From: Mobula birostris
Taxonomy: Eukaryota
Length of the DNA stretch: 64,000 bases
Assembly: GCF_030028105.1 (NCBI RefSeq)
Contig: NC_092384.1
Coordinates: 12,550,316 to 12,614,315, forward strand
Direction: 5' to 3'
The translations under genes and the position numbers were made by a program. Positions within the stretch are counted from its first letter, which is position 1, and every line of letters begins with the position of its first letter. Positions 9,689 to 64,000 of this stretch are shown here, one piece after another. The notes below the pieces were generated by a model, which saw only the letters and a list, made by a program, of their open reading frames with translations, did not search any database and was not told the origin of the DNA.

Positions 9689-12341
9689 TGTTACATACCC
9701 GTGGGTATCTTGTGACTGTCTTATGACCATGATGTAATTGAGTATCTTGTGAGCATGATGTAATTGTCTTGTGATGGTGGGGTGATGTAATTTTCCTGCC
9801 AGTGAGGTCACATGATGTAATTTTCCTGCCGGTGTGAGGTCACGTGATGGCATGTTCCAACAGGTATATAAGGGGAAACCCCCGTTGGCATGCAGTTAGT
9901 TCATCAGTTAGTTTGTTAGTTAGTTTTGCTGCGTATTCGTCTCATGACACAGTTTCATTTTAAAGTGGAGTTTTTACTTTCTATTGTAAGGTGTAAACAC
10001 ATTGTGCCGGCAGTTTCGCCAGTTGCTGCCGGTTCTTGTTTGCTGCACCTTTGTTTTACCTTTATAGTCTAGTATTCGACAGTGACAACCTTACCAAAAT
10101 ACGGGAACTTGAAGGATTGAGTAAAGTTGGTGTCGTTGGGCAGTTTTATTAAGGATTGACCTTATTGAATCTTCGTTCAGGAATAGTGGCCTGCATCTGA
10201 GATAACCCCTGCAAGATCAGGAAGGTTTGTGCAGTGTTTACCCTCCAGGAAAAGGTCAGTTCCTTTAAGCCGTTTTATTTCCTTCGCCCTGAATCCTTTG
10301 GACGAGGCATCTCACGGCTGGGATCAGCAGTAATGTCACGTCTTCGAAGAAATCAGTTTCCAGGAAAGTCTCTCCTTATTGACTGTATAAATCACTTGGA
10401 CTTTCGAATTTACCACTTTAAGACTGTGTTTGAATTTACCACTTTAAGAACTGTTCCAGAGTTCGGTTGTTTGTTAAATTGCCGTACAGCAGTTAACATA
10501 GAAAATAGGTGCAGGAGTAGGCCATTCGGCCCTTCGAGCCTGCACCGCCATTTATTATGATCATGGCTGATCATCCAACTCAGAACCCCACCCCAGCCTT
10601 CTCTCCATCCCCCATAGCCACAAGGGCCATATCTAACTCCCTCTTAAATATAGCCAATGAACTGGCCTCAACTGTTTCCTGTGGCAGAGAATTCCACAGA
10701 TTCACCACTCTCTGTGTGAAGAAGTTTTTCCTAATCTTGGTCCTAAAAGGCTTCCCCTCTATCCTCAAACTGTGACCCCTCGTTCTGGACTTCCCCAACA
10801 TCGGGAACAATCTTCCTGCATCTAGCCTGTCCAATCCCTTCAGGATCTTATAAGTTTCAATCAGATCCCCCCTCAATCTTCTAAATTCCAACGAGTACAA
10901 GCCCAGTTCATCCAGTCTTTCATCATATGAAAGTCCTGCCATCCCAGGAATCAATCTGGTGAACCTTCTGTGTACTCCCTCTATGGCAAGGATGTCTTTC
11001 CTCAGATTAGGGGACCAAAACTGCACACAATACTCCAGGTGTGGTCTCACCAAGGCCTTGTACAACTGCAGTAGTACCTCCCTGCTCCTGTACTCAAATC
11101 CTCTCGCTATAAATGCCAGCATACCATTCGCCTTTTTCACTGCCTGCTGTACCTGCATGCCCACTTTCAATGAATGGTGTATAATGACACCCAGGTCTCG
11201 TTGCACCTCCCCTTTTCCTAATCAGCCACCATTCAGATAATAATCTGTTTTCCTATTTTTGCCACCAAAGTGGATAACTTCACATTTATCCACATTAAAT
11301 TGCATCTACCATGAATTTGCCCACTCACCCAACCTATCCAAGTCACCCTGCATCCTCTTAGCATCCTCCTCACAGCTAACACTGCCACCCAGCTTCGTGT
11401 CATCTGCAAACTTGGAGATGCTGCATTTAATTCCCTCATCCAAGTCATTAATATATATTGTAAACAACTGGGGTCCCAGCACTGAGCCTTGCGGTACCCC
11501 ACTAGTCACCGCCTGCCATTCTGAAAAGGTCCCGTTTATTCCCACTCTTTGCTTCCTGTCTGCTAACCAACTCTCCACCCACACCGATACCTTACCCCCA
11601 ATACCGTGTGCTTTAAGTTTGCACACTAATCTCCTGTGTGGGACCTTGTCAAAAGCCTTCTGAAAATCCAAATAAACCACATCCACTGGTTCTCCCCTAT
11701 CCACTCTACTAGTTACATCCTCAAAAAATTCTATGAGATTCGTCAGACATGATTTTCCTTTCACAAATCCATGCTGACTTTGTCCGATCATTTCACCACT
11801 TTCCAAATGTGCTGTTATCACATCCTTGATAACTGACTCCAGCAGTTTCCCCACCACCAACGTTAGGCTAACCGGTCTATAATTCCCTGGTTTCTCTCTC
11901 CCTCCTTTTTTAAAAAGTGGAGTTACATTAGCCACCCTCCAATCCTCAGGAACTAGTCCAGAATCTAACGAGTTTTGAAAAATTATCACTAATGCATCCA
12001 ATATTTCTTGGGCTACTTCCTTAAGCACCCTGGGATGCAGACCATCTGGCCCTGGGGATTTATCTGCCTTCAATCCCTTCAATTTACCTAACACCACTTC
12101 CCTACTAACATGTATTTCGCTCAGTTCCTCCATCTCACTGGACCCTCTGTCCCCTACTATTTCTGGAAGACTATTTATATCCTCCTTAGTGAAGACAGAA
12201 CTAAAGTAATTATTCAATTCAGGTTAACTTCAGGTTAAGTTAGTCATTTGTTTACTTTTCACTATTGTTGAGTAGAGTTTAATAAATGTTTATGTTTGTT
12301 TATATAACTCAATTCTATATTCATTGTTGCCAACCATGTAA
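9689..12341 (+). mobile_element. Gypsy-type solo LTR (about 9689-10496 plus about 12220-12341) split by a CR1 insertion
   Basis: Starts TGTTACA. Four tgatgtaatt repeats and 'gtgaggtcacgtgatg' are shared with the LTRs at 49622 and 58961. TATA near 9865. An AATAAA-containing remainder ending 'catgtaac' follows the CR1. The right boundary is uncertain. Confidence 0.6.
10497..12218 (-). mobile_element. Young CR1 LINE, 5'-truncated, RT domain to 3' tail, frameshifted
   Basis: ORFs 11306..12217 and 10580..11206 carry [17 protein letters not shown]-like, [29 protein letters not shown] and [11 protein letters not shown]. Confidence 0.95.
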
Positions 12342-20227: not shown

Positions 20228-22675
20228 CCATAGAACCATAGAAACTACAGCACGGAAACAGGCCTTTTGGCTCTTCTTGGCTGTGCCAAACCATTTTCTG
20301 CCTAGTCCCACTGACCTGCACACGGACCATATCCCTCCATACACCTCCCATCCATGTATCTGTCCAACTTATTCTTAAATGTTAAAAAAGAACCCGCATT
20401 TACCACCTCGTCTGGCAGCTTATTCCATACTCCCACCACTCTCTGTGTGAAGAAGTCCCCCCTAATATTCCCTTTAAACTCTCCCCCCCCATGTCCTCTG
20501 GTTTTTTTCTCCCCTTGCCTCAGTGGAAAAAGCCTGCTTGCATTCACTCTATCTATACCCATCATAATTTTATATACCTCTATCAAATCTCCCCTCATTC
20601 TTCTACACTCCAGAGAATAAAGTCCTAACCTATTCAACCTTTATCTGTAACTGAGATTCTCAAGTCCTGGCAACATCCTTGTAAACCTTCTCTGCACTCT
20701 TTCAACCTTATTTATATCCTTCCTGTAACTTGGTGACCAAAATTGAACACAATACTCCAGATTCGGCCTCACCTCATCAACCTCTTCATAACATTCCAGC
20801 TCTTATACTCAATACTTTGATTAATAAAGGCCAATGTGCCGAAAGCTCTCTTTACGACCCTATCTACCTGTGACGCCACTTTTAGGGAATTTTGTATCTG
20901 TATTCCCAGATTCCTCTGTTCCACTGCACTCCTCAGTGCCTTACCATTAACCCTGTATGTTCTACCTTGGTTTGTCCTTCCAACATGCAATACCTCACAC
21001 TTGTCTGTATTAAACTCCATCTGCCATTTTTCAGCCCATTTTTCCAGCTGGTCCAAGTCCCTCTGCAGGCTCTGAAAACCTTCCTCACTGTCTACTACAC
21101 CTCCAATCTTTGTTTCATCAGCAAATTTGCTGACCCAATTTGCCACATTATCATCCAGATCATTGATATAGATGACAAATAGCAATGGACCCAGCACTGA
21201 TCCCTGTGGCACACCACTAGTCACAGGCCTCCACTCGGAGAAGCAATTCTCTACTACCACTCTTTGGCTTCTTCCATTGAGCCAATGTCTAATCCAATTT
21301 ACCACCTCTCCATGTATACCTAGCGACTGAATTTTCCTAACTAACCTCCCATGCAGGACCTTGTCAAAGGCCTTACTGAAGTCCATGTAGACAATATCCA
21401 CTGCCTTCCCTTCATCCATTTTCCTGGTAACCTCCTCGAAAAATTCCAATGGATTGGTCAAACATGACCTACCACACACAAAGCCATGTTGACTCTCCCT
21501 AATAAGTCCCTGTCTATCCAAATGCTTGTAGATTCTGTCTCTTAGTACTCCCTCCAATAACTTACCTACTACTGATGTTAAACTTACTGGCCTATAATTT
21601 CCCGGATTACTTTTCGATCCTTTTTTAAACAACAGAACAACATGAGCCACGCTCCAATCCTCCGGCACCTCACCTGTAGACAGCGACATTTTAAATATTT
21701 CTGCCAGGGCTTGTCCATTCCTTGTCCATGATCAAGTTGCAACTAATGGTGTTATGATCACTGGAACCAAAGTGCTCCCCTACACAGACTTCTGTCACTT
21801 GTCCTAACTCATTTCCTAACAGGAGATCCAATATTGCATCCCCTCTAGTTGGTCCCTCTATATATTGATTTAGAAAACTTTCCTGAACACATTTTACAAA
21901 CTCTAAACCATCTAGACCCCTAACAGTATAGGAGACCCAATCAATATATGGAAAATTAAAATCCCCTACCACCACAACTTTATGTTTCCTACAGTTGCCT
22001 GCTATCTCTCTGCAGATTTGCTCTTCCAATTCTCGTTGACTATTGGGTGGTCTGTAATACAATCCCACTAATGTGGCCATACCTTTCCTGTTTCTCAGCT
22101 CCACCCATAAGAAGTCAGTAGACAAGCCCTCTAATCTGTCTGGCCTGAGCACTGCTGTAATATTTTCCCTAACAAGCAATGCTACTCCCCCACCTTTCAT
22201 TCCTCTGCCTCGATCACATCTGAAACATCGGAACCCTGGAATATTAAGCTGCCAGTCCTGCCCCTCCTGTAGCCAAGTTTCACTAATTGCTATAACACCA
22301 TAATTCCACGTGTCAATCCATGCCCTCAACTCAACCGCCTTCCCCGCAATACTCCTAGCATTGAAATATATACACCTCAGAAGATTTTTACCACCACTCA
22401 CAACCTTTCTATTAGCAGATTTGCTTAAACTTTTAACATCATTTATTTTCACCCCAGCCACACTGTCAGCTCTGGCACTCTGGTTCCCATCCCCCTGCAA
22501 ATCTAGTTTAAAGCCTCCCCAATAGCACTAACAAACCTCCCTGAAAGGATATTGGTCCCCCTGTGGTTCAAGTGTAACCCGTCTCTCTTGTACAGGTCCC
22601 ATCTGCCCCAGAAGAGGTCCCAATTATCCTGAAATCTGAAACCCTGCTCCCTACACCAGTTCCTCAGCCACTGTG
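20228..22675 (-). mobile_element. CR1 LINE spanning the ORF1 SGNH-esterase C-terminus, APE, RT and 3' tail, with internal deletions
   Basis: ORF1 end: WCREQGFRF...DGLHLNHRG. APE: YFNARS, ISETWL, GDFNFP, GSSDHN. RT ORF 20769..21689. An internal deletion at about 21715 joins APE to RT. Confidence 0.95.
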
Positions 22676-44455: not shown

Positions 44456-45999
44456 ATGGAGGCTGAGGAATTTATAAAGGCGCCAACCTTGGAGGCATTA
44501 GAGGATGCCAGGAAATCGGAATTGGTAGCTGTGGCCAAACTGTTGAATCTTGCTAAGGGGAAGTCGACAATGAGGAGAGAGGAGATTAACAGAGCTATCG
44601 TAGAGCAGTATGCATCTAAAGGTGTGTTTCCCCAAGGCGAGCTGGGGGTGGTGTCTATTGAAAAACCTGCCGGAGACGCGGTACAGGTACAGCTTGAAAA
44701 ACTGAGACTCGAGCAGGAGTTCCGGGTACGANNNNNNNNNNNNNNNNNNNNNNNNNNNNNNNNNNNNNNNNNNNNNNNNNNNNNNNNNNNNNNNNNNNNN
44801 NNNNNNNNNNNNNNNNNNNNNNNNNNNNNNNNNNNNNNNNNNNNNNNNNNNNNNNNNNNNNNNNNNNNNNNNNNNNTGGAGAAGTTAAAGATAAGGGCAG
44901 AGCAGGGGCTCGTGCCGAACCAAGGTGGAGGGTTCCGGGCGACCCAGGAGGTTAGGCTGGTTCCCCCATTTGACAATACCAATGTGGATCGGTACTTTCT
45001 CCATTTCGAAAAAGTGGCTATAAGTCAGGACTGGCCGAGGGATAAGTGGGTTATTTTGCTTCAGTGTGTACTGAAAGGGAAAGCCCAAGAAGCTTACTCG
45101 GCTTTGTCCGCGGAAGATGCCCAGAGGTATGAGGTGGTGAAAGAGGCCATCCTCAGGATTTATGGGTTGGTCCCGGAGGCATACCGGCAGAGGTTCCGGA
45201 ATGCGAGGAAGCAGTGGGACTGCACGTATTTAGAGTTTGCCTGTGAGATGCAGACATATTGTGAGTGTTGGTGCGCTTCGAAGGGGGTAGAGGGGGATTA
45301 TGACAGCCTGCTACAGCTGATCCTGATTGAGCAGTTTAAAGGTTGTGTCCCTGAGGGTATGAGACCTACCTCGATGAGAAAGAGGCAGCCACGTTAGCCG
45401 CAACTGCTAAGTTAGCGGATGAGTATGCGTTGACGCATAAAATGAAGTTTGCCACGAGTAAAGGCTATCAGAAGGGTAGTCAGGACAGTGGGGAGAGTCC
45501 GTCGGAAAAGTCAGAAAGTAAGCCGGGGACTAGTGAAAAGGATAAGGTAGACTGGGAGCAGTCTGGTAGGAAGTCTCCTGGGGTTGTCTGTTATAATTGT
45601 GGGAAAGTCGTACTCTTTGCGTCCAGATGCTTTGCCCTAAAGAAGGAGACAGGAAAAGGAAAAACAGCGATTTTGACTGGCTGTATCGAGTTGGTAAGTG
45701 AACCGCTAGGGAAGGACAGGTCTGCCAAAGTTCAGGAAGGGCGCGAGAAGTTTATCTCAGCCGGATTGGTGTCAGTGAAGGAGGGATTAAAACCAGTTCC
45801 AGTGCAGATCTGGAGAGACACAGGAGTGTGTCAGTCACTAATACTGAAGAGTGTATTAGAGTTTAGCTCAGAGACCCAGACTGGGGAGGTAGAGGTCAAA
45901 GGTGTTGGGGAAGGGACAGAGTCAGTCCCTTTGCACCAGATACACTTACAAAGCAACCTGGTCTCTGGACTAGTCACGATCGGGGTGAGGTCCGAATAA
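44456..45999 (+). pseudogene. Gag (SCAN-like domain, decayed zinc knuckle) plus aspartic protease, frameshifted near 45365
   Basis: Contains EAYRQRFR...LILIEQF..CVP (SCAN-like), CYNCGKVVLFASRC (a CCHC knuckle with His lost) and WRDTG (protease, 45811-45825). Confidence 0.85.
44732..44876. other. Assembly gap (145 N) inside the gag coiled-coil region
   Basis: Run of N read directly from the sequence. Confidence 0.99.
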
Positions 46000-50899: not shown

Positions 50900-51520
50900 A
50901 CTAGTCACTAAACTCTAGGAATAATGTGCTTTATCTCTATCAGCCTATGGCTTCTGTGGATAAGCCAAATCGAATCCATGCCAAAATGTCTCTGGATCCC
51001 ATGGCTTTTAACTGTCTAAATCAGCCAACCATGGCAAACAGCATTAAAAGCCTTAGTGATGTCCCTATGCTCCACATCCACCGCTCTAGCTTCATCAATT
51101 TGTTTCACAACGGAATCAAAACTAGTCAATTGGGCTTCCCAGCACGATCAGTTCCTTCTAAAATCATACTGTTGATCTCTAATGAGACGGCGCTATCCAA
51201 ATTCTCGTATATTGTGTCCTTAAAAATCTTCTGCAATAGATTTCTCACCAGTCGCATAAGCTGACTGGTCTATAATCACATAATTATCCCTAGTATCTTT
51301 CTTGAAGAAAGCACAACTTAATAGCGTGACATCCTGCGATGCCTTGGTACGACACTTGTCGCCATTGAGACGCACAGATCATGGTCAGCGCCCCAGATAT
51401 CACACTCATATTACCCATAATAACCTGGGATATATCTCATCCAACCATGGGGACATCGATCCTAATTTTTGTTTTAAATTCCAGCTCGACATGTTCCTGC
51501 AAAATTCCGTGTTCTAAGTT
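50900..51520 (-). mobile_element. Old CR1 RT fragment
   Basis: Decayed antisense of the RPVSL, LIEF and DF.KAFDK region. Confidence 0.6.
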
Positions 51521-51877
51521 GACCACACATTCACGATCGGGGTTGAAGTCGCTCAGCTCAAGAACCAGCATACTTAACATATCTTTATTTGCCAATCGTC
51601 CTAGACTAATCCTGCTTATTATTCAAAATTATCATAAAAGTGCTTAGAAGTGCAAATGTTGTGAAGATTTGGCATTGTAGATCTATTCGGTCATACAAAA
51701 ATAATGATTGTAGAAGTTCACAAAACCCTGTAAAATCTCCTGTATTTATTTCGAGGACCTCAATCAGCAGTAAAGAACCTGAGTGTTAATAAAGAGAATA
51801 GCGATGAAAATTGAATAATTAAATATATTATTTCCTCTAGTCTGGCATCGGTCACTGGTTTACCCCACCGTCCCACT

Positions 51878-51911
51878 CCACGTCAGGATATTATCCGTCA
51901 TAGGATATAAA
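51878..51911 (+). promoter_or_regulatory. Candidate core promoter of the Ig receptor: two CGTCA half-sites and a TATAAA box
   Basis: The sequence reads CCACGTCAGGATATTATCCGTCATAGGATATAAA. TATAAA at 51906-51911 lies 64 nt before the leader ATG. Confidence 0.5.
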
Positions 51912-51974
51912 CCACTCCCTCACTCAATCATTAAAATCGCACATCAACAGACTCATTGAATCTGTTAGGCAAGA

Positions 51975-52014
51975 ATGTTTCTCTTTCTGGCAGTCAGTGA
52001 GATCATTTACATAG
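51975..52014 (+). CDS. IgSF receptor exon 1: leader
   Basis: The ATG opens MFLFLAVSEIIYI, then G|gtacag (phase 1). A 142-nt intron joins it in frame to the V exon. Confidence 0.75.
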
Positions 52015-52156
52015 GTACAGCTTTATTCATTTCTGCGTGTTTTAATTTATCAATCAATGTCCGTTTAGATTACACAATATTGAAGCTAACTGTGAATCAG
52101 CTGTAGGGTACATTTATGAAAAATTCAATTTAACTAAATTAACTTTTCCTTTTTAG

Positions 52157-52477
52157 CTGTGGATCAAACTTCGTTCAATGCATCTCAATCGCCCAAAGAA
52201 GCGGTGGTATCCAAAGGAGAGAACGTCACGTTCTACTGCGTATTTCCCATTTCTCAGGATGAATCCTGGGTAAAAGTCTACTGGCGGAAACAGGGCGAGA
52301 ATGAATACCAACGGACAAGCACCGGCAGCAGAAAACGTTCCGGTCAGAGAGGTAAAAGAACTTGGTACTTTGAGTTGCAAAATGTAATGGTCCAAGATTC
52401 TGGATTGTATCTGTGTTCATTGACCTGCAAAGAATCGCCTGCAAGAAATGGAACCGGATCACTTCTAAAGGTTCACG
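52157..52477 (+). CDS. IgSF receptor exon 2: V-set domain with a germline-joined J-like G strand
   Basis: Acceptor ttttccttttttag and donor CACG|gtgagc, 321 nt, phase 1-1. Contains SQSP..GENVTFYC, VYWRK, DSGLYLC and NGTGSLLKV. Confidence 0.93.
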
Positions 52478-52974
52478 GTGAGCTAAAGTAGCTGGAGAAC
52501 ATATTATCTATAAAGTACATAGAATGTAACACGCTAATAAACAGGCCCACTATGAAAATGTCCTTTAACATCATTTGAAAAAAAAAACAAGCAAGGGAAA
52601 ATCTGCCAGATGATGGAAATCCAAGCAACACACACAAAATGCTGGAGGATCTCAGCAGGCTAGGCAGTATATCTGGAAAAGTGTACAGTCGACATGTCGG
52701 GCCAAGACCCTTCACTCAGTCCTTATGAATTCATCATTTTGTATGAGTTGCTTTAACATCCTTTGTCCAGGGTATGTTGTGAGAATAAGGTCAATGCTCT
52801 ATCCCTGTCTGCGAATAAGAGGTGCTCTAAGGGTTTGCTATAAATCTTTTAATTCACTGAATTTTACAACATCCTGACTCTGTTATCCAATACTAGTAAC
52901 CGGAGTTTTGTCTCTATTGATCTGTAATACAGAGACATTCATAAAGTTTCACTCTCTGCGTGTGTACCTACTTC

Positions 52975-55015
52975 CAAGCACCTTAGAACTATGCCCTCTA
53001 GTGCTAGTTATTTCAGCCCTGGGGAAAAGCCTCTGATTATTCACACGATCATTGCCTCTCATTATCTAGAACACCTCTATCAGGTCACCTCTCATCCTCT
53101 GTCGCTTCAAGGAGAAAAGACCAAGTTCACTCAACCTATTCTCATAAGGCATGCTTCCCAACCCAGGCAACATACTTGCAAATCTCCTCTGCACCCTTTC
53201 TATGGTTTGCACGTCCTTCTTGTAGTGAGGTGACCAGAACTGAGCAGAGTACTCCAAGTGGGATCTGACCAGGGTCCTACATAGCTGCAACGTTACCTCT
53301 CGGCTCTTAATCTCAATCCCACGATTGTTGAAGGCCAATGCACCGTATGCCTTCTTAACCACAGCACCAACCTGTGTAGCAGCTTTGAGTGTCCTATGGA
53401 CTCGGATTCCAAGAACCCTCCGATCTTCCACACTGCCAAGAGTCTTACCATTAATGCTATATTCTGCCATCATATTTGACCTACCAAAATCAACTTATCT
53501 GGGTTGAACTCCATCTGGCACTTCTCAGCCCAGTTTTGCATTCAATCAATGTCCCATTGTAACCTCTGACAGCACTCCACACTATCCACAACAACCCGTC
53601 ATCAGCAAATTTACTAGCCCATCCCTCCATTTCCTCATCCTGGTCATTTATAAAAATCACAACGAGTAGGGGTCTCAGCACAGATCCCTGAGGCACACTG
53701 CTGGTCATAGGCCTCCATGCAGAATGTGACCCATCTACAACCACTCTTTGCCTTCTGTGGGCAAGCCAGTTCTGGATCCACAAAGCAATGTCCACTTGGA
53801 TCCCATGCCTCCGTAATTTCTCAATAAGCCTTGTATGGGGTACCTTATCAAATGCCTTGCTAAAATCCATGTACACGACATCTATGGCTCTACCTTCATC
53901 AGTGCGCTTAGTCGCATCCTCAAAAAGTTCAGTCAGGCTCGTAAGGCACGACCTGCCTTAGACAAAGCCATGCTGACTATTCCTAATCATATTATGCCTC
54001 TCCAGATGTTTATAAATCCTGCCTCTCAGGATCTTGTCCATCAACTTACCAACCACTGAAGAAAGAGTTACCGGTCTATAATTTCCTGGGCTATCCCTAG
54101 TCAAGTCAAGTCAACTCAAGTCAAATTTATTTATATAGCACATATAAAAACAACCCATGTTGACCAAAGTGCTGTACAAACCATAACAGGTAGCTAAAAT
54201 CGCAAATACAAGAAACACAGACATAAACAACAAAACACACAGCTTATAGGCACAAACTAAACAACACATGAGCCTGGGCACAAGCCAAAAATCCCTACTC
54301 CCTTTCTTGAAGAAGGGAACAATATCCGCAACCCTACAATCCTCCAGAACCTCTCCCATCCTCATTGATGATGCAAAGATCATTGCCAGAGGCTGAGCAA
54401 TCTCCCCCTCGCTTTCCACAGTAGCCTGGGTAGATCCCGTCCAGTCCTGGTGACTTATCCAACTTGATATTTTCCAAAACCTCCAGTACATCCTTTTCCT
54501 TAATATCTACATGCTTAAGCTTTTCATCCCACTGCAAATCATCCCTACAATCGCCAAGATCCTTTTCTGTAGAGAATACTGAAGCAAAGTACTCATTAAG
54601 TACCTCTGCTATCTCCTCCGTTTCAATTCACACTTTTCCACTATCACACTTGATCGGTCCTATTATCTCACATCTTATTCTCTTGCTCTTCACATACTTG
54701 TAGAATGCCTTGGGGTTTTCCTTAATTCTGTCCGCCAAGGTCTTCTCATGACCCCTTCTGGCTCTCCTAATTTTGTTCTTAAGCTCCTTCCTGCTAGCCT
54801 TATAATCTTCTAGATTCCTATCATTACCTAGTTCTTTGAACCTTTCTTAATCTCTTCTTTTCTTCTTGACTAGATTTACAACAGCCTTTGTACACCACGG
54901 ATCTTGTACCCTACCATTCTTTCCATGGCTCATTGGAATGTACCTACTCAGAACCCCACACAAATATCTCCTGAACATTTGCCACATATCTTCCGTACAT
55001 TTCCCTGAGAACATA
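52975..55015 (-). mobile_element. CR1 LINE (RT to 3' part) in the receptor intron, with a LINE tail inserted at about 54105-54285
   Basis: ORFs 53066..53473 and 53490..53876 carry [19 protein letters not shown] and HLEYSAQFWSP. The insert begins (tcaag)n. Confidence 0.9.
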
Positions 55016-55484
55016 TTATAACTTTCCAATATGCATTAAATCCCAATTTCCAATGGTCCTACCATTGTATTCTCATCTCTGACTGCTTAAGTTACTGTTT
55101 GACATTCCAAAGGAAGTATAGAATAAATATAAAGGATTTAAAAGACAGTGTGTAACCCCCTGCTGGTCAACTACTCTGCACTGTATACTGGAGTGTGGAA
55201 AATTCAAAACTAAACCATGCACTCCTTCAATTATTGAAGGGTGATGAAGCATGCAAATGGTATGGTGTTGACTGCTGGCGAATTTGAAAATGGTATACTA
55301 TTTTCATCCACCTCGGTAAAGATATTTTTATTATAAAGCAGCTTACTTATTCATTTTCACACAATTAAGCAGCTGTTTGCTCTTGAAGTGTAAAACACAT
55401 TTCAAGTTTCTCCCTGCTGCCTTTTGTCAGGATTATTTGCTTAATTCTTTGGACTTCGTAAAAATAGATTATGAATATCAAAAG

Positions 55485-56540
55485 GGCCCCTTTCGGAATG
55501 GCGGGCGGTGACCAGTGGGGTACCGCAGGGATCAGTGCTAGGACCACAGCTGTTTACAATATATATATATATATTAATGATTTAGATGAGGGAATTAAAA
55601 GTAGCATTAGCAAATTTGCCGATGACACAAAGCTGGGTGGCAGTGTGAAATGTGAGGAGGATGTTATGAGAATGCACGGTGACTTGGACAGGCTGGGTGA
55701 GTGGGTAGATGCATGGCAGATGCAGTTTAATATGGATAAATGTGAGGTTATCCACTTTGGTGGTAAGAACGGGAAGGCAGATTATTATCTAAATGGAGTC
55801 AAGTTAGGAAAAGGGGAAGCACAACGAGACCTAGGTGTTCTTGTACATCAGTCACTGAAAGCAAGCATGCTAGTACAGCAGGCAGTGAAGAAAGCCAATG
55901 GCATGCTGGCCTTCATAACAAGCGGAATTGAGTATAAGAGCAAAGAGGTCCTTCTGCAGCTGTACAGACCCCTGGTGAGACCACACCTGGAGTACTGTGT
56001 GCAGTTTTGGTCTCCAAATTTGAGGAAGGACATTCTTGCTATTGAGGGAGTGCAGCGTAGGTTCACAAGGTTAATTCCCGGGATGGCGGTACTGTCATAT
56101 GTGGAAAGATTGGAGCGACTGGGCTTGTATACTCTGGAATTTAGAAGGCTGAGAGGGGATCTTATTGAAACATGAGATTATTGAGGGATTGGACACGCTG
56201 GAGGCAGGAAGCATGTTCCCGCTTATGGGTAAGTTCAGAACCAGAGGCCACAGTTTAAGAATTAGGGGTAGGCCATTTAGAACGGAGTTGAGGAAAAACT
56301 TTTTCACCCAGAGAGTGGTGGATATATGGAATGCTCTGCCCCAGAAGGCTGTGGAGGCCAAGTCTCTGGATGCTTTCAAAGAAAGAGATGGATAGAGCTC
56401 TTAAGGATAGCAGAATCAAAGGTTATGGGGATAAGGCAGGAACTGGATACTGATTGTGGATGATCAGCCATGATCACAGTGAATGGAAGTGCTGGCTCGA
56501 AGGGCCCAATGGCCTACTCCTGCACCTATTGTCTATTGTC
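55485..56540 (+). mobile_element. CR1 LINE RT C-terminus and 3' end in the receptor intron
   Basis: ORF 55471..56175 carries INDLDEG, FADDTK and [11 protein letters not shown], ending in a (tattgtc)n tail. Confidence 0.93.
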
Positions 56541-56744
56541 TAAGTGGCATTATGACCACTGAGTTATTGAGATACAGCAAATACTGTCTAATATGAATCA
56601 GGGTCAGGTATTTACAGCTGATATAGATCATAATAATATTTCTTCAAATGAAACATCACAGTTAATGAACCTAAGGACAATTTAAGGGAAATATTTCAAT
56701 ATCGCAACATCAGTTAGCTTTTTTTTCCTTTATCTGTTCCACAG

Positions 56745-57044
56745 TAGTACCAACTCTGTTGAAAATTTTCGCAAAAAAGCATTCACCTACTGCCTTCATT
56801 ATTGTGTGTGAAACAACTGCCTTTAATCCGAAGGACTTCTCGCTTACCTGGTATGAAAATGGTGTTGAAATAGTCTTGGGCATGCAGACCAATGTAAAGA
56901 ACACCGAAGGTCTTTATTAGGTTTCAAGCAACTTGACAGAGATGCATCAAGATAAGAATGGCCCAAATTATACCTGTTTGGTATCTTGTGTCTCCCTCAA
57001 TACTTCAGCGGTGGCAGTCTATTCTATTTCTGAATCTAAACAGG
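56745..57044 (+). CDS. IgSF receptor exon 3: C1-set domain with one in-frame TAG (56918-56920)
   Basis: Polypyrimidine acceptor ...ttccacag and donor CAGG|gtatga, 300 nt, phase 1-1. Translates IVCETTAFNPKDFSLTWYENG...TEGLY*VSSNL...YTCLVSCVSL, with the C1 hallmarks CxxxxFxP, WxxNG and YxCxV. Confidence 0.85.
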
Positions 57045-58132
57045 GTATGAAACCATTTCCTGTTAATTTCTCAAATATACATAACATTAATAATTAATAA
57101 TTTGTTAAAGGTCTCAAGGAAAACCCACTTTCATTCATTGAAACTTAAGTACAGCGTACTGTTAAAGGGATTTTATTTAATATCGAGTTCTGTGGGTTGC
57201 AAGACAGGCATTAATAAAAACACTGCTCTGCGACAAAATTATACATTTAATGTCTTTTGTATTTTTAGAAATTTGGGAGCAAGTTTATTCATCTTTATAA
57301 CTTGCATGTCCACCCACGTGTATTGATATTTCTTCTGTGTTCCATTTGGAAAAAAAAAAATCATTCTTTGCCAGTGATTCCGTACCTTTCAGTTGAACTG
57401 TTTGCAGGAGTTTCCGTTCTGTTTCTAGTTTCCATCAGATTTCCATTTGAGACATATAAAGTATCTCAACTCCAGTTCTCTCCACGTAAATATCCCCTGA
57501 ACATTTGTCACAGTTCTTCAGTACATTTTCCTGAAACCTTCTGTTCCCAACTTCTGCTTTCAAGTTCCTGCCTGATAGCTTCATATTCCCCCTTACTCCT
57601 ATTAAATGCTTTCCTAATTTATCTGCTCCTATCCCTCTCCAATGCTATAGTAAAGGAGACAGAATTGTGATCACTATCTCCAAAATGCTCTCCCACTGCC
57701 AGATCTGACACCTGACCAGGTTAACTTTCCAGTACCAGATCAAGTACAGCCTCTCCTCTTGCAAGCTTATCTATATATTGTGTCAATCTTGCACTGGGAA
57801 AATTGTTTCAGACATTGCTGCTACAATCCTCTTATCATGTGCAATCCATCAGCCATAGTCACATCGAGCCTGAGATCAATTAAACACACTTTAATTGTCC
57901 AATATCAGAATAACTACGGGGTTTATTTTGATAAACAGAGCGCTGTGTATTTTATTTACTAATTTTCTCTCATATTTTTATGTTGTGTTGTGTTGTCTTA
58001 TCCGCTATTATTCACACACCCCAACGCCACCACTAGCACGAGCACCAGTAGCGACCCTTCATCTCCTCTCAGAAAAGAGAGTTATATATTTACTTCTCAG
58101 CTTCTATAACGTATATTCTTTCAAACCTCCAG

Positions 58133-58246
58133 GTTCCTCTGGCAACTCTCCTTCCATTTGGTTTCTCCGTTGTGCGATGGGCGGACCGGCGATTCTACTG
58201 CTAATGGTCGTCACTGGGACGGTGTGCCGAAAGCAGGAAAGAAAGG
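58133..58246 (+). CDS. IgSF receptor exon 4: stalk, transmembrane segment with Arg, basic stop-transfer
   Basis: Acceptor ttcaaacctccag and donor AAGG|gtatga, 114 nt, phase 1-1. Translates (G)SSGNSPSIWFLRCAMGGPAILLLMVVTGTVCRKQERK. Confidence 0.75.
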
Positions 58247-58607
58247 GTATGATTTAAAGAACATTTCCCAAATCCACAAGCAAGACAAAAAAAAAATTTC
58301 CTCGTCTTTTCCAGGACAGCACAATCATCACTGGGGTTTCTCTAAACTGCGATGTCTGGGTCACGTATTTCAGATATTTAGCAGAAGTCAAGCATTCAAT
58401 TCTCAGCCAGACTATGACGTGGTTAATTATCTTTTCCAATTCTCTCGCCATATATTTCGTTCGCATGCCAAACGATTACTCTATTTTCCGGAACAAGAAA
58501 ATGCGATTGGTGTAAGCAAAGAAATCCTGAATTTTTTTTTGCAAAATTTGTAGCTACTCAGAGAGAGAGAACATTTGGCCTACTGTGCTTTGTGCCTGCT
58601 TTCACAG

Positions 58608-58641
58608 GATTTGAAGCTCCAATTTATTCCCCTGTAACAAG
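58608..58641 (+). CDS. IgSF receptor exon 5: cytoplasmic exon with a YxxV motif
   Basis: Acceptor tgctttcacag and donor ACAAG|gtacgc. Translates (G)FEAPIYSPVT(R) and ends in phase 2. The next good acceptor (59876) would give R followed by TAA. Confidence 0.6.
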
Positions 58642-58960
58642 GTACGCACACGATTCTCCGCCAATAACACATACTTCAGGACATTTAGAGTTGCCAGTTC
58701 ACTTAACTTCTATTACTATGGATGAGGGAGGTTCCCAGGATATTTTAAGAGAAAAACATGCGATTTCTCGGAGAATGTGGAAACATCTGAGATCACAACC
58801 GACCTGAGATCGCTGGAAGTGGTTGCGGTGGAATAACTATTGCGCTCCTGTGACACGTTGGGCAAAAGCCAATACAAGAGATTCTGCAGATGCTAACATT
58901 TGTGTGCTACTATAAATATCTTTACGATCATTTCGTTAACAATTTTGTGAATGGTGCTAC

Positions 58961-59844
58961 TGTTAGGTAACCGGCAACAATGAATTTTAATCGACTTTTA
59001 TGAAAACAACCAAACATTTATTAAACATATATAAACGATAAGGAAAAAAAAAAACAAATGAAAACTTTAACTAGAGGTTAAACAGGTACGCAGCCATTCA
59101 TCAACTGCACTCGGCTCTGGTTCTTACAGCGTTAAATGCGAAAACAGTTCTTAAAGCGATACAGTCAGATATAGTTCTTAAAGCGATAACTTCGAAAGTC
59201 CAACAGTTTTACACATTCAATTGGGAGAGACTTCTCTGGAGAAAGATTTCTTCACCGACGCACCTTTACTGCCGATTCTGTCCACAGGATTCCCGATGCC
59301 GAAAATAAACAGTTTAAATCGACTGACCTTAAATTCCTTTTAGAGAGAGAGAGAGAGAGAGCTTTTGTGCATGAACTCATTGCGCTATTGCAAGAGTTAT
59401 CTCGATGCAGGTTCTCTTCAACGAAGAATCAATAAGGTCGATCCTTTATTAAACTGCCAAACAATTCCGACTTCTCTCGATCCTTCACTTCAATGAATTC
59501 TTCACTCTCCCTTCAAAATTGTCGGAATTGAGTAAATTGGCACTTCCAGCCACAAATTTCCAGTTCAATAATACAAATCTTGTAAGAGAACGCACCTTCC
59601 GTTTTAAAAATGAAACTGCGTCACAAAAACAAACACGCAACAGAAACGGAAATACAACACGTTCAACATGGAAATCTACAAACTCAAAAACCCTCTGCGT
59701 TACCTGAGTCGACCCTTATATAGTCACGGGGGGGGCACATGTCATCACGTGACCTCACAACGGCGGGAAAATCACATCAGGTGACCTCCAAAAGACCGTT
59801 ACATCATTTTCACAAAAAACCCAGATCTCCTTGAGCATGTAACA
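58961..59844 (-). mobile_element. Gypsy-type solo LTR (884 bp) in the last receptor intron
   Basis: TGTTAG...GTAACA ends and a perfect 4-bp TSD CTAC. Same family as 49622-50489. Confidence 0.9.
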
Positions 59845-60691
59845 CTACACTTTCATGTCATTATATTTCGTTCCAGATAAGGACGAATGCTTTATGGAAG
59901 CGAATCATTGTGAGGTTTGTCCATGCGTACATATAACGCCATATATTCTGGTCATTCAATGGACGATCTGTTCTGGACAGAATTAACGAGAGTCTTATTA
60001 CAACAGTTTGTGCTTGCATAGTCTGCTTATTCTTCTTGTCGCTAACAATGAATCAAATCTTGTTAAGACGTATATTTGGAATTTATTTATTTATTTATTT
60101 ATGCATTTCATCATATATACTTAAATGACATAAACTAAATTATCTCGTGTTGATAGTGTCGTGGTTTCTCACAAATGCCAAGGAGACACAGAACATCTTT
60201 CAAGTACTTTCAAACTTTAATTTGCAAATCAAAGCTGAGACAATCAGAAAGCTAGATGCTGACTGCATGTCGAACCTTGTACATAGCATTTTTTATAGCA
60301 ATTCTCCTATCTTAGCTACATTATCATATCTAATCGGCCTGTGATTACATATGATCAATATATCCGCTCTTAACTTTCCACTATTGTTTTACTCCCCAAC
60401 TTAATTATGTCCTAGTTTACATTTTTGGACCATATGTCTTCTCATCCCTAACCACAGTTATTTCTTAACTAGCCATGCATTGACATATTGCCACATATTT
60501 CATCATCTTACCTGCCACCATTATCTTTCTACTTGATTTCATTCTAGTTCTCTTCATGAATTAATAGTGAACAGGTCAAAAGTCATGGCTACATAGTGAA
60601 TACCTTCTAAAGAGCTAACAGTGGTTACATAGTAAATATTGTAGAAAATACGATGTGTGCATTTGAGTAAATACTGTAATACATTTGAGTT

Positions 60692-62037
60692 GATATAACT
60701 TAGGAAGCTGACCGAGGGGACGTGGAATTCGCACTTCTCCGCCTTTACGAATAATTTATTCTCCCCCAGCGTCTGCAGGACTTGACGGACATGATGAATG
60801 TATTGGGGACTGTTGGAAAAGATTAGGATGTCATCCAGATAGACAAACACAAAGCGTTTAATAAAGTCTCTTAGTACGTCGTTAATCAAGGCTTGAAAAA
60901 CTGCGGGGGCATTGGTGGGGCCAAAAGGCATGACCAAGTACTTGAAGTGGCCTAAAGGGGTATTGAATGCTGTCTTGCGCTCGTCCCTCTCCCTTATTCG
61001 GACCAGATGGTAGGCGCTTCGTAGGTCCAACGACGAGAAGATGGTGGCTCCGTGAAGTGGTTCGAACGCAGAACTTATCAGAGGCAGTGGGTACTTGTTC
61101 TTTATGGTTATATGATTTAGGTCGCGGTAGTCGATGCAGGGACGTAGTGAACCATCTTTCTTCCCCACAAAGAAGATCACTGCACCCACCGGGGAGGATG
61201 AGGGTCGGATGATACCCGCCGCAAGAGATTCACTGATGTAACCCCCCCATTGCTTCCCTCTCTGGCCGGGACAAGTCATATAGCCGAATGGTGGATAGAG
61301 GAGCTCCGGGGAGAAGGTCAATAGCACAATCGTATGGTCAGTGTGGAGGCAGGGAAAGGGCACGTTGTTTACTAAACACTTGTCCCAGGTCGTGGTACTT
61401 CGCTGGAACACTGGACAAGTCAGGGGGTTCAACGGCAGGTCAGGTCGAGGTGGTTTTTACAGGGGAAAGGGCCGACTGCAGACAAGTGGCCTGACAAAAC
61501 CGACCCCAGCTGGCTATCTTTCCGGTAGACCAAACAATGTAAGGGTTATGGCGGCTTAACCAGTGGTACCCAAGAACTATTGGAGCTTGTTGCAGATGAT
61601 TCGTGTCTGCTGGGTTCATGTTGGCCAGTTTGTTCTGTTGCACGGGGCGATTGAGGAGAACCCAAGTGCAGGACACCGGCACGTCGACTGAGTTGTGGAT
61701 GCGGGCGTAGACATGAACGTAGAACAGCAAACCAGAGGAATCTTGACAAGGAGACAGGATCTGCAGGGACTATCTTGAAACTAGAGCAGAACTTGGAAGT
61801 TAACCTAGAAGTAACAGTTCTAAGCGAACGAGAGGACGAAGTACCAAACAAGAATAGACCAACAAACTGGCGTCCTGTGCAGTGATGCCATCGTACTTAT
61901 TTCACAGTCTCTGATACAAACCAGGTGTACTGTAATTAAGTAAACTAGCAGCAATTGGAATTCTAGTAGCTTTAATTAGGGCATAATCAGGGAGAAAGGA
62001 GCGTTAAAGGGGAACAACCAAACGGAACCATGAGAAC
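60692..62037 (-). mobile_element. Deleted sushi/Tf1-type Ty3/Gypsy element: 5' LTR (about 61636-62037), gag start, protease end, RT
   Basis: RT motifs: [45 protein letters not shown] and [10 protein letters not shown]. Gag MNPADTNHLQQA is fused directly to PIVLGYHWLSRHNP. Confidence 0.88.
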
Positions 62038-64000
62038 GTCTCTGGATCCCATGCCTTCTGACTTTCTGAATAAGCCTACCGTGTGGAACCTTGTCAAATG
62101 CCTTACTAAAATCCATATAGATCACATCCACTGCAGAAACCTCATCTATATGCCTGGTCACCTCCTCAAAGAACTCTATCAGGCTTGTTAGACACGTTCT
62201 GCACTTCACAAAGCCATGCTGACTGTCCCTGATCAGACCATGATTCTCTAAATGCCCAGAGATCCTATCTCTAAGAATCTTCTTCATCAGCTTTCCCACC
62301 ACAGACGTAAGGCTCAGTGGTTGATAACTACCCGGGCTATCCCTACTACCTTTTTTGAACAAGGGAACAACATTCGCCTCCCTCCAGTCCTCCGGTATCA
62401 TTCCCATAGACAAGGAGGACATAAAGATCCGAGCCAGATTCTCAGCAATCTCTTCCCTCGCCTCGTGGAGCAGTCTGGGGAATATTCCTTCAGGCCCCGG
62501 TGACTTATCCGTCCTAATGTATTTTAATAACGCCAACACCTCCTCTCCCTTAATATCAACATGCTCCAGAACATCAACCTCACTCATATTGTCCTCACCA
62601 TCATCAAGTTCCCTCTCATTGGTGAACACCGAAGAGAAGTATTCATTGAGGACCTCACTCACGTCCAGAGCCTCCAGGCACATCTTCCCACCTCTATCTC
62701 TAATCGGTCCTACATTCACTCATGTCATCCTTTTGTTCTTCACATAATTGAAGAATGCCTTGGGATTTTCCTTTACCCTACTCGCCAAGGCCTTCTCATG
62801 CCCCCTTCTTGCTCTTCTCAGGCCCTTCGTAAGCTCCTTTCTTACTACCCTATATTCCTCTATAGACCCATCTGATCCTTGCTTCCTAAACCTCATGTGT
62901 GCTGCCTTCTTCCACCTGACTAGATTTTCCACCTCACTTGTTACCCATGGTTCCTTCACCCTACCATTCTTTTTCTTCCTCACCAGGACAATTTTATCCC
63001 TAACATCCTGATAGAGATCTCTAAACATCGATCACATGTCCATAGTACATTTCCCTGCAAAAACATCATCCCAATTCACACCCACAATTTCTAGCCTTAT
63101 AGCCTCATAATTTGCCCTTCCGCAATTAAAAAAAAATCCTGTCCTCTCTGATTCTATCCTTTTCCATGATAATGCTGAAGGCCAGGGACTGTTCCCCAGA
63201 TGCTCACCCACTGAGAGATCTGTGACCGGGCCCGGTTCGTTACCTACTACTAGATCTAGTATGGCATTCCCCCAGTCGGCCTGTCAACATACTGTGACAG
63301 GAATCCGTCCTGGACACACTTATCAAACTCTGCCCCGTCCAAACCCTTGGAACGCATCAGGTGCAAATCAATATTAGGGAAGTTAAAGTCACCCATGATA
63401 ACAACCATGTTATTTTTGCACTTTTCCAAAATCTGCCTCCCAATCTGCTCCTCGGTATCTCTGCTGCTACCAGGGGGCCTATAGAATACTCCCAATAGAG
63501 TAACTGCTCCCTTCCTGTTCCTGACTTCCACCCATACTGACTCAAAAGAGGATCATGCTACATTACCCACCCTTTCTGTAGCTGTAATAATATCCCTGAT
63601 CAGTAATGCCACCCCTCCTCCCCTCCCCCCCCATCCCTTCTAAAGCACAGAAATCCAGGAATATTGAGAATCCATTCCTGCTCTGGTGGCAGCCAAGTCT
63701 CTGTAATGGCCACAACATCACAATACCATTTATGTATCCAAGCTCTCAGTTCAACACCTTTGTTCCTGATGCTTCTTACATTGAAGTGCACGCACTTTAG
63801 CCCTTTGATCTTTCTACCTTTACATGCTTTATTCTGTTTCTCTTTCCTCAAAGCCTCTCTATATGTTAGATCTGGCTTTACTCCATGCATTTCTTTCACC
63901 ACCCTATCGCTCCGGATCCCATCCCCTTGCAAATTACTTTAAACCCTCCCGAACCATGCTCGCAAACCTACCTGCAAGGATATTGCTCCCCCTCCAGTTC
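62038..64000 (-). mobile_element. CR1 LINE: ORF1 esterase C-terminus, APE and RT N-half, running off the window
   Basis: APE motifs HFNVRS, AITETWL and GDFNFP. RT ORF 61976..62719 carries [12 protein letters not shown]. The ORF1 end NWRGSNILAGRF lies at 63940-64000. Confidence 0.93.

Follow-up and report, generated by a model that had tools for sequence, protein, structure and literature searches.

The window analyzed here is a stretch of 64,000 nucleotides of Mobula birostris DNA that carries a gene for a predicted immunoglobulin (Ig)-type receptor, made of a leader, a V domain already joined to a J-like strand (VJ), a C1-set domain and a transmembrane (TM) segment bearing an arginine. The exon borders were read within positions 51500-59200 and the exons were then joined. 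The leader, VJ, C1 and TM exons are all in phase 1, have GT-AG borders and share one common frame, which is interrupted by a single in-frame TAG (Table 1). An initial annotation had proposed five canonically spliced exons in one frame apart from this TAG; four of the exons and the TAG are retained here, and the fifth is replaced as described below. When the V exon was run exhaustively through phmmer, 155 proteins were retrieved; the best one, XP_059849417 (P0001), is a 291-aa protein of the stingray Hypanus sabinus with 90% identity (E 1.1e-57). Since this protein, searched back on the window by tblastn, also finds the V (E 3e-62), C1 (E 3e-42) and TM (E 7e-12) exons, the four-exon gene is real and not a chance match.

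Pfam recognizes a V-set domain on the VJ exon (E 5e-9), and the J-like strand NGTGSLLKV is located within this exon, ahead of its donor. Neither the heptamer (CACAGTG/CACTGTG) nor the nonamer of a recombination signal sequence (RSS) was found in positions 52101-52600, in line with the V exon with a built-in J-like G strand and no RSS that had been described from the first reading. The C1-set nature of the second domain was also borne out: the exon matched its relatives by tblastn with E-values of 3e-42 to 3e-46 (75-81% identity to P0001 and to P0162, a Mobula hypostoma protein), and Pfam C1-set scored 20.7 bits on the first half-exon of the window, just below the cut-off of 21, and reached E-values of 1e-11 to 3e-15 in intact relatives. 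The acceptor of the C1 exon is a tandem CAG/TAG (NAGNAG, 56739-56750) giving either VHVVPT or VHVPT, and the tandem is kept in Hypanus sabinus, in which both products are annotated (VYVVPTP in P0001, isoform X1, and VYVPTP in P0153, isoform X2). The TM exon matched P0001 and another Hypanus isoform, P0163 (tblastn E 5e-12 to 7e-12, 54-67% identity). Its span, IWFLRCAMGG, does carry the Arg announced by the initial annotation, within an RCAMG motif common to the activating forms of Hypanus and Hemitrygon (P0001 and P0152). The leader region 51969-52052 was matched by residues 3-27 of P0001 in tblastn. The window signal peptide is four residues shorter than that of the relatives and has a Glu at the position of their Gly.

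Table 1. Features of the VJ-C1 receptor gene, in window positions (LINE, long interspersed nuclear element)
Feature	Position	Strand	Remarks
Leader exon	51975..52014	+	MFLFLAVSEIIYI; phase 1 out; begins at the Met5 equivalent of relatives (MSSSMFLFLAVSGNIYIA)
VJ exon, germline-joined	52157..52477	+	106 full codons; Cys27 to Cys86, 58 residues between
Intron 2	52478..56744	+	4.3 kb; LINE and reverse-transcriptase fragments on both strands
C1-set exon	56745..57044	+	Alternative acceptor at 56748
In-frame TAG	56918..56920	+	Glu in close relatives (EGLYEVSS)
Connecting piece and TM exon	58133..58246	+	Arg near outer end of span (IWFLRCAMGGPAILLLMVVTGTV), then CRKQERK
Candidate fifth exon ("Tyr tail"), probably not an exon of this gene	58608..58641	+	FEAPIYSPVT; AG/GT borders, frame fits, no homologue
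Cytoplasmic exon	59877..59914 (read-through to 59986)	+	DKDECFMEANHCE; acceptor ttccag, donor gtttgt

The fifth exon had been proposed to encode a tyrosine-containing tail. Its motifs IYSP, YSPV and EAPIY were absent from all 195 family proteins fetched, and the RNA depth of a sister species over this stretch ranged from 0 to 0.44. A counterpart of the family tail was found further downstream, as residues 263-291 of P0001 match window positions 59873-59959 (tblastn E 8e-8, 65% identity). Reading through the donor of this cytoplasmic exon gives VCPCVHITPYILVIQWTICSGQN (VCPCVHITPYILVIQ...) up to a TAA at 59984-59986, the same as in Hypanus isoform X1, and in nine batoid relatives a conserved exon xEECxTEANxxE, with the motif xEECxTEA, follows RKQxRK. 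Because the tyrosine peptide occurs in none of the 195 proteins and the conserved tail exon is present instead, the tyrosine tail is unsupported, and the candidate stretch probably does not count among the exons of the gene.

Judged by its sequence, the window gene is an additional member of a chondrichthyan VJ-C1 paired receptor family that is already in the databases. Its V exon shares 33-90% identity with 19 family members, and the family occurs in a chimaera (Callorhinchus), in sharks (Scyliorhinus, Mustelus, Heterodontus, Heptranchias, Stegostoma and Chiloscyllium) and in rays (Hypanus, Hemitrygon, Narcine, Amblyraja, Pristis, Mobula hypostoma and Mobula birostris). This range was established from 30 phmmer matches checked by name and from all the proteins of two further searches; one all-chondrichthyan match list was limited by the word index of the search. 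Outside Chondrichthyes, we obtained weak matches alone, to reptile multi-V proteins and to a bonefish V-TM protein. The members checked occupy one chromosome or scaffold per species. Their RefSeq or automatic names include SIRP-alpha-like and SIRP-beta-like, tapasin-related-like, NCR3 ligand 1-like, CD276 homolog, PD-L1-like, NCR3LG1-like, Ig lambda-like, MHC class II beta-like and TCR-beta-like, SIRP-like being the commonest RefSeq name. The first reading of a non-rearranging gene of a cartilaginous fish resembling natural killer (NK) receptors is thus upheld, the gene having the VJ, C1 and Arg-bearing TM layout of an activating NK-type receptor, in a family of chimaeras, sharks and rays. The rarity that it implied is not: the gene is one member of a large paired-receptor family, predicted in RefSeq under misleading names.

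Two signatures define this family. The V signature, QxP..GxNVTFYC..WWKxGENEY..RKRFG..QDSGxYxC..GNGTGSxLxV, is one to which the window V conforms, and the window C1 belongs with the C1 signature, FYP..LTWYKNG..EGLYEVSS..YTCLVSHVSL, with three hallmarks mutated and the stop. In the Hemitrygon akajei protein P0152 (XP_072926702), the peptide MYLNRPKKRWYPKERTSRSTAYFPFLRMNPG that precedes the true V is a V exon read in a wrong frame, and an equivalent out-of-frame open reading frame (ORF) is present in the window at 52178-52273; this RefSeq model probably fuses a duplicated V exon. A shark NCR3 family with eight subtypes was reportedly described by Kinlein et al. in 2021. The nurse-shark NCR3 entries were not retrieved with the zebra-shark member P0173, which is uninformative since that search was limited by its word index.

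Two forms could be told apart among the proteins fetched. In the first one, an Arg is located in the outer part of the span (LRCAMG, IRCTVGG, SRCVMGG or IPRLVLG) and the tail has 5-39 residues. In the second one, the span is uncharged and a long tail contains immunoreceptor tyrosine-based inhibition motifs (ITIMs) such as LTYAAL, LSYATL, TEYAEL and VAYVTL. In a tree of the V+C1 ectodomain built by maximum likelihood (40 rows), the activating and inhibitory forms interleave and 10-12 changes of type are needed. The window ectodomain is sister to the inhibitory gene P0162 of Mobula hypostoma (support 93/62; V 90%, C1 81%), and both fall inside a batoid clade supported at 100/100 together with stingray activating genes. 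In its TM and tail exons, the window gene instead matches the activating genes of stingrays (Hypanus P0001). Near-identical ectodomains carried on opposite predicted signalling modules are the classical paired-receptor design, and the window gene has the features predicted for the activating form, namely the TM Arg and a tail exon homologous to those of P0001 and P0152.

We think that the window gene is probably a recently inactivated copy, either a pseudogene or a null allele, of the activating partner of such a VJ-C1 receptor pair. The TAG replaces the conserved Glu of EGLYEVSS and is carried, with 0 differences, by a 756-nt DNA contig from the same sample. Taking two stingray proteins as outgroup, 18 lineage-specific changes were counted for the window versus 5 for P0162 (binomial p = 0.011), and the terminal branches measure 0.091 for the window versus 0.033 for P0162. 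Changes on the window lineage include WWK>WRK, FYP>FNP, VSHVSL>VSCVSL, PTPLK>PTLLK and an extra Cys in the loop resembling complementarity-determining region 3; the His of VSHVSL (His207), which is Cys in the window, is invariant in 28 relatives. At the other end of the gene, the sole remaining leader ATG is preceded, two codons upstream, by an in-frame TAG (51963-51977), where the relatives start with MSSSM (MSSSMFLF) or MSASV, so the ancestral start codon appears to have been lost in this copy. Finally, three RNA runs labelled as the same species showed zero depth on the V and C1 exons. The intactness implied by the initial annotation finds no support in a copy with a stop codon, losses of hallmark residues and an accelerated lineage. 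An assembly error behind the TAG was rejected as same-sample DNA reads carry it, and selenocysteine or programmed read-through was rejected as the codon is TAG and the relatives have Glu there.

Several points weigh against inactivation. The RNA runs labelled as the same species are small, of unspecified tissue and only three, which makes absent expression weak evidence. Four of the 42 family-conserved columns are violated in the window, inside the range of 0-10 found for intact members. The TAG may be on one or on both chromosome copies, the DNA run being probably the source of the assembly, and the pair used for the relative rates, taken from two species, may be paralogues and not orthologues. 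Another explanation could be that the gene is functional in the species, the TAG being a private or heterozygous null allele of the animal sequenced or a haplotype-specific lesion, and the substitutions the product of the fast ligand-driven evolution that is typical of NK-type receptors. In its favour, no damage is seen in the four splice-site pairs, the frame, the two Ig cysteine pairs, the J motif or the TM Arg, and contigs drop rare variants, so a second allele may exist. However, the changes fall on C1 hallmarks showing little or no variation among 28 relatives (His207, FYP and P129), and this explanation has also to accommodate the excess of changes on the window lineage, the loss of the start region and the lack of RNA in the three runs; it seems rather unlikely to us.

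RNA coverage was absent from the same-species runs on V and C1 and visible in a sister species. RNA contigs of this sister species covered the V exon at 96% identity and ended exactly at 52154/52477. Because they stop at the exon borders, the V exon is used in the sister species, in an orthologue or in a close paralogue. The reading of RNA junctions is confounded by intronic repeats, and the usable signal is the ending of these contigs on the V exon edges. One RNA contig, of 660 nt, probably spans the V-C1 joint of a paralogue. A second DNA contig of the same sample matches 56721-57039 (the C1 exon plus 24 nt of upstream intron) with 3 gaps and, as it is only ~88% identical, it indicates a paralogous C1 exon elsewhere in the genome.

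We then compared the gene with the known families built of V and C1 domains. Among PDB sequences, a phmmer search with the window V ranked the variable domains of IgNAR (VNARs) first among single domains (E 3.7e-7), followed by TCR-beta V, Ig light-chain V (VL) and PD-L1. The AF2 (AlphaFold 2) model of this domain has a mean predicted local distance difference test (pLDDT) score of 87 and is predicted to have no C'' strand. Foldseek with this model placed VNARs in about the first 29 ranks at 21-28% identity, and in a geometry-only alignment VNAR tied with PD-1, VL, TCR V-alpha, NCAM d1 and CD79b (Z 13.9-14.7). A family V profile searched against PDB sequences gave a list dominated by multi-Ig proteins and was non-discriminating. 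For the family C1, the best PDB match was the C3 domain of UrIg2 (27.7 bits), followed by IgH constant domains and SIRP-alpha (2wng, E 1.3e-9). The predicted two-domain structure of the Hypanus relative (pLDDT 82) matched Fab light chains in PDB (E 2e-16), and similar E-values at 13-22% identity were obtained for B7-H6, PD-L1, TCR-beta, butyrophilins, TAPBPL, SIRP-alpha and Ig kappa. Because all these families match at such low identity and with similar E-values, orthology of the window gene to B7-H6, SIRP, tapasin-related protein, TCR or Ig light chain (IgL) is rejected; the B7-H6 or SIRP orthologue, which the initial annotation had named as the finding that would make the gene an ordinary family member, did not emerge, the Foldseek E-values being nearly equal across families.

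It could also be proposed that the family is the chondrichthyan counterpart of B7-H6 or of other B7 ligands, which have a V-C1-TM layout, and that the window gene is a broken ligand gene. In Swiss-Prot, NCR3LG1 (B7-H6) is the top structural match with E 5.8e-16, and PD-L1, PD-L2 and butyrophilins come next; the NCBI names NCR3 ligand 1-like, CD276 homolog and PD-L1-like are given to several members, and the V of PD-L1 is a weak sequence match for two members. However, the identity to these ligands is 16-19% and the E-values equal those of TCR-beta, TAPBPL, SIRP-alpha and Ig kappa. In addition, the recurrent split between an Arg-bearing span with a short tail and an ITIM tail is a signature of leukocyte paired receptors, and the V, with its full GxGxxLxV J motif, is by sequence nearest to VNAR, TCR V, VL or NKp30, which together make a ligand gene very improbable. 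An extremely improbable reading is that the stop is bypassed by skipping the 300-nt C1 exon to give an in-frame V-TM receptor similar to NKp30, since, although this exon is symmetrical (phase 1 to phase 1), natural V-TM members lacking C1 exist (P0003, P0020, P0053 and P0065) and the Hypanus isoform P0163 joins mid-C1 to the TM exon, no V-TM joint was seen in any read or contig examined, the internal donor used at the P0163 boundary is GGC in the window and not GGT, and the V domain also has unusual changes.

Among the known receptors, NKp30 (NCR3) shares with the window gene a non-rearranging VJ-type V, a J-like strand containing GNGT, a short tail and a TM Arg placed at the outer end of the span. 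When the V of the Pristis member P0057 (NCR3-like at NCBI) was compared with PDB, human NKp30 came out as the best single-domain match (E 6.7e-6). In contrast with tetrapod NKp30, which is a single V, the window gene has its C1 between V and membrane, and human NKp30 was not among the top 60 PDB phmmer matches or the top 50 Foldseek matches of the window V. NKp30 was not found either, at E <= 0.01, as a match of the members P0020 and P0005. The likeness to SIRP lies in a VJ-like V followed by a C1-set domain and in the coexistence of ITIM and charged-TM forms with near-identical ectodomains; the tail motifs LTYAxL and TEYAxL of the inhibitory relatives presumably resemble the ITIMs of SIRP-alpha. 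Unlike SIRP, which has a V-C1-C1 layout, the window gene has a single C1, and it bears an Arg versus the Lys of SIRP-beta; the structural alignment gave 13-15% identity with a TM-score of 0.30-0.32, and the C1 match was no better than that of IgH constant domains.

Three further systems have to be considered. UrIg is a non-rearranging elasmobranch Ig with three C domains that is secreted, and UrIg2 has 9-11 C domains (PMC12227049). Both resemble the window gene in that a germline-joined VJ exon precedes C1-type domains in a cartilaginous fish, whereas the window gene has one such domain, the TM Arg and paired ITIM relatives. The VNAR is likewise short, its cysteines being separated by about 58-60 residues, and lacks a C'' strand; it is rearranged by RAG, whereas the window V is germline-joined, and the preference for VNAR is not family-wide, other members preferring NKp30 or PD-L1. 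TCR and Ig light chains have the same V-J-C1 layout, and the two-domain model places the family near Fab light chains in PDB and near TCR-beta in Swiss-Prot. Unlike these chains, the window gene has no RSS, has V and J in one exon, shares ~20% identity with them and has no connecting-peptide cysteine.

Coming back to a recently inactivated activating receptor, what its intact form might do can be proposed from the stingray protein XP_059849417. This form would have a signal peptide, a germline-joined V that is short and holds a J-like G strand, a single C1-set domain, an Arg close to the outer end of its membrane span and a tail of ~30-40 residues in which no signalling motif is conserved. Judging from NKp30, NKp46, activating KIR/LILR and SIRP-beta, this Arg would be the partner of the aspartate in an adaptor bearing an immunoreceptor tyrosine-based activation motif, which may be of the FcR-gamma/CD3-zeta type as suggested by the outer-leaflet position of the Arg. 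The cell would in turn be switched on once the V domain binds a ligand, and the sister genes with nearly the same ectodomain, no Arg and ITIM tails (LSYATL, TEYAEL) would switch it off. The transcript of the window gene would be removed by nonsense-mediated decay, which is expected because the TAG is upstream of two exon junctions.

VJ-C1 genes that do not rearrange are discussed as remnants of the receptor that the RAG transposon entered (PMC12227049, PMC10751288). The combination of a VNAR-like V and a UrIg2-like C1 is, in this respect, of evolutionary interest. It might be envisaged that the family is a formally undescribed, membrane-bound and non-rearranging VJ-C1 lineage spread across Chondrichthyes, with a V that would be the closest germline-joined relative of IgNAR/NAR-TcR V and a C1 close to UrIg2/Ig constant domains, and thus a relative of the pre-RAG antigen-receptor precursor that survives at the cell surface, already organized in activating/inhibitory pairs, a proposal that we hold to be distinctly unlikely. 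More simply, rays carry VJ-C1 genes as ordinary, fast-turning-over paired activating/inhibitory receptors, some of which are decaying. In terms of annotation, the entries named "SIRP-like", "tapasin-related-like", "NCR3 ligand-like" and "MHC class II beta-like" represent one chondrichthyan family. The single locus of the window, as a probable pseudogene, adds little by itself.

Regarding the surroundings of the gene, no MHC gene was found within the window, and Rfam and bacterial-type promoter scans returned nothing relevant. A run of 145 N at 44732-44876 corresponds to an assembly gap or to masked sequence. The gene is set in a retroelement-rich stretch covering 52478-56744, 57400-57840 and 58870-59890 as well as much of 1-51000 and 60500-62750. 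LINE reverse-transcriptase/endonuclease ORFs with repeat-level depth were found, for example, at 11306-12217(-), 20769-22500(-), 53490-53876(-) and 60554-61432(-), the third of which is located in intron 2, where it matches RVT_1 (E 6e-13).

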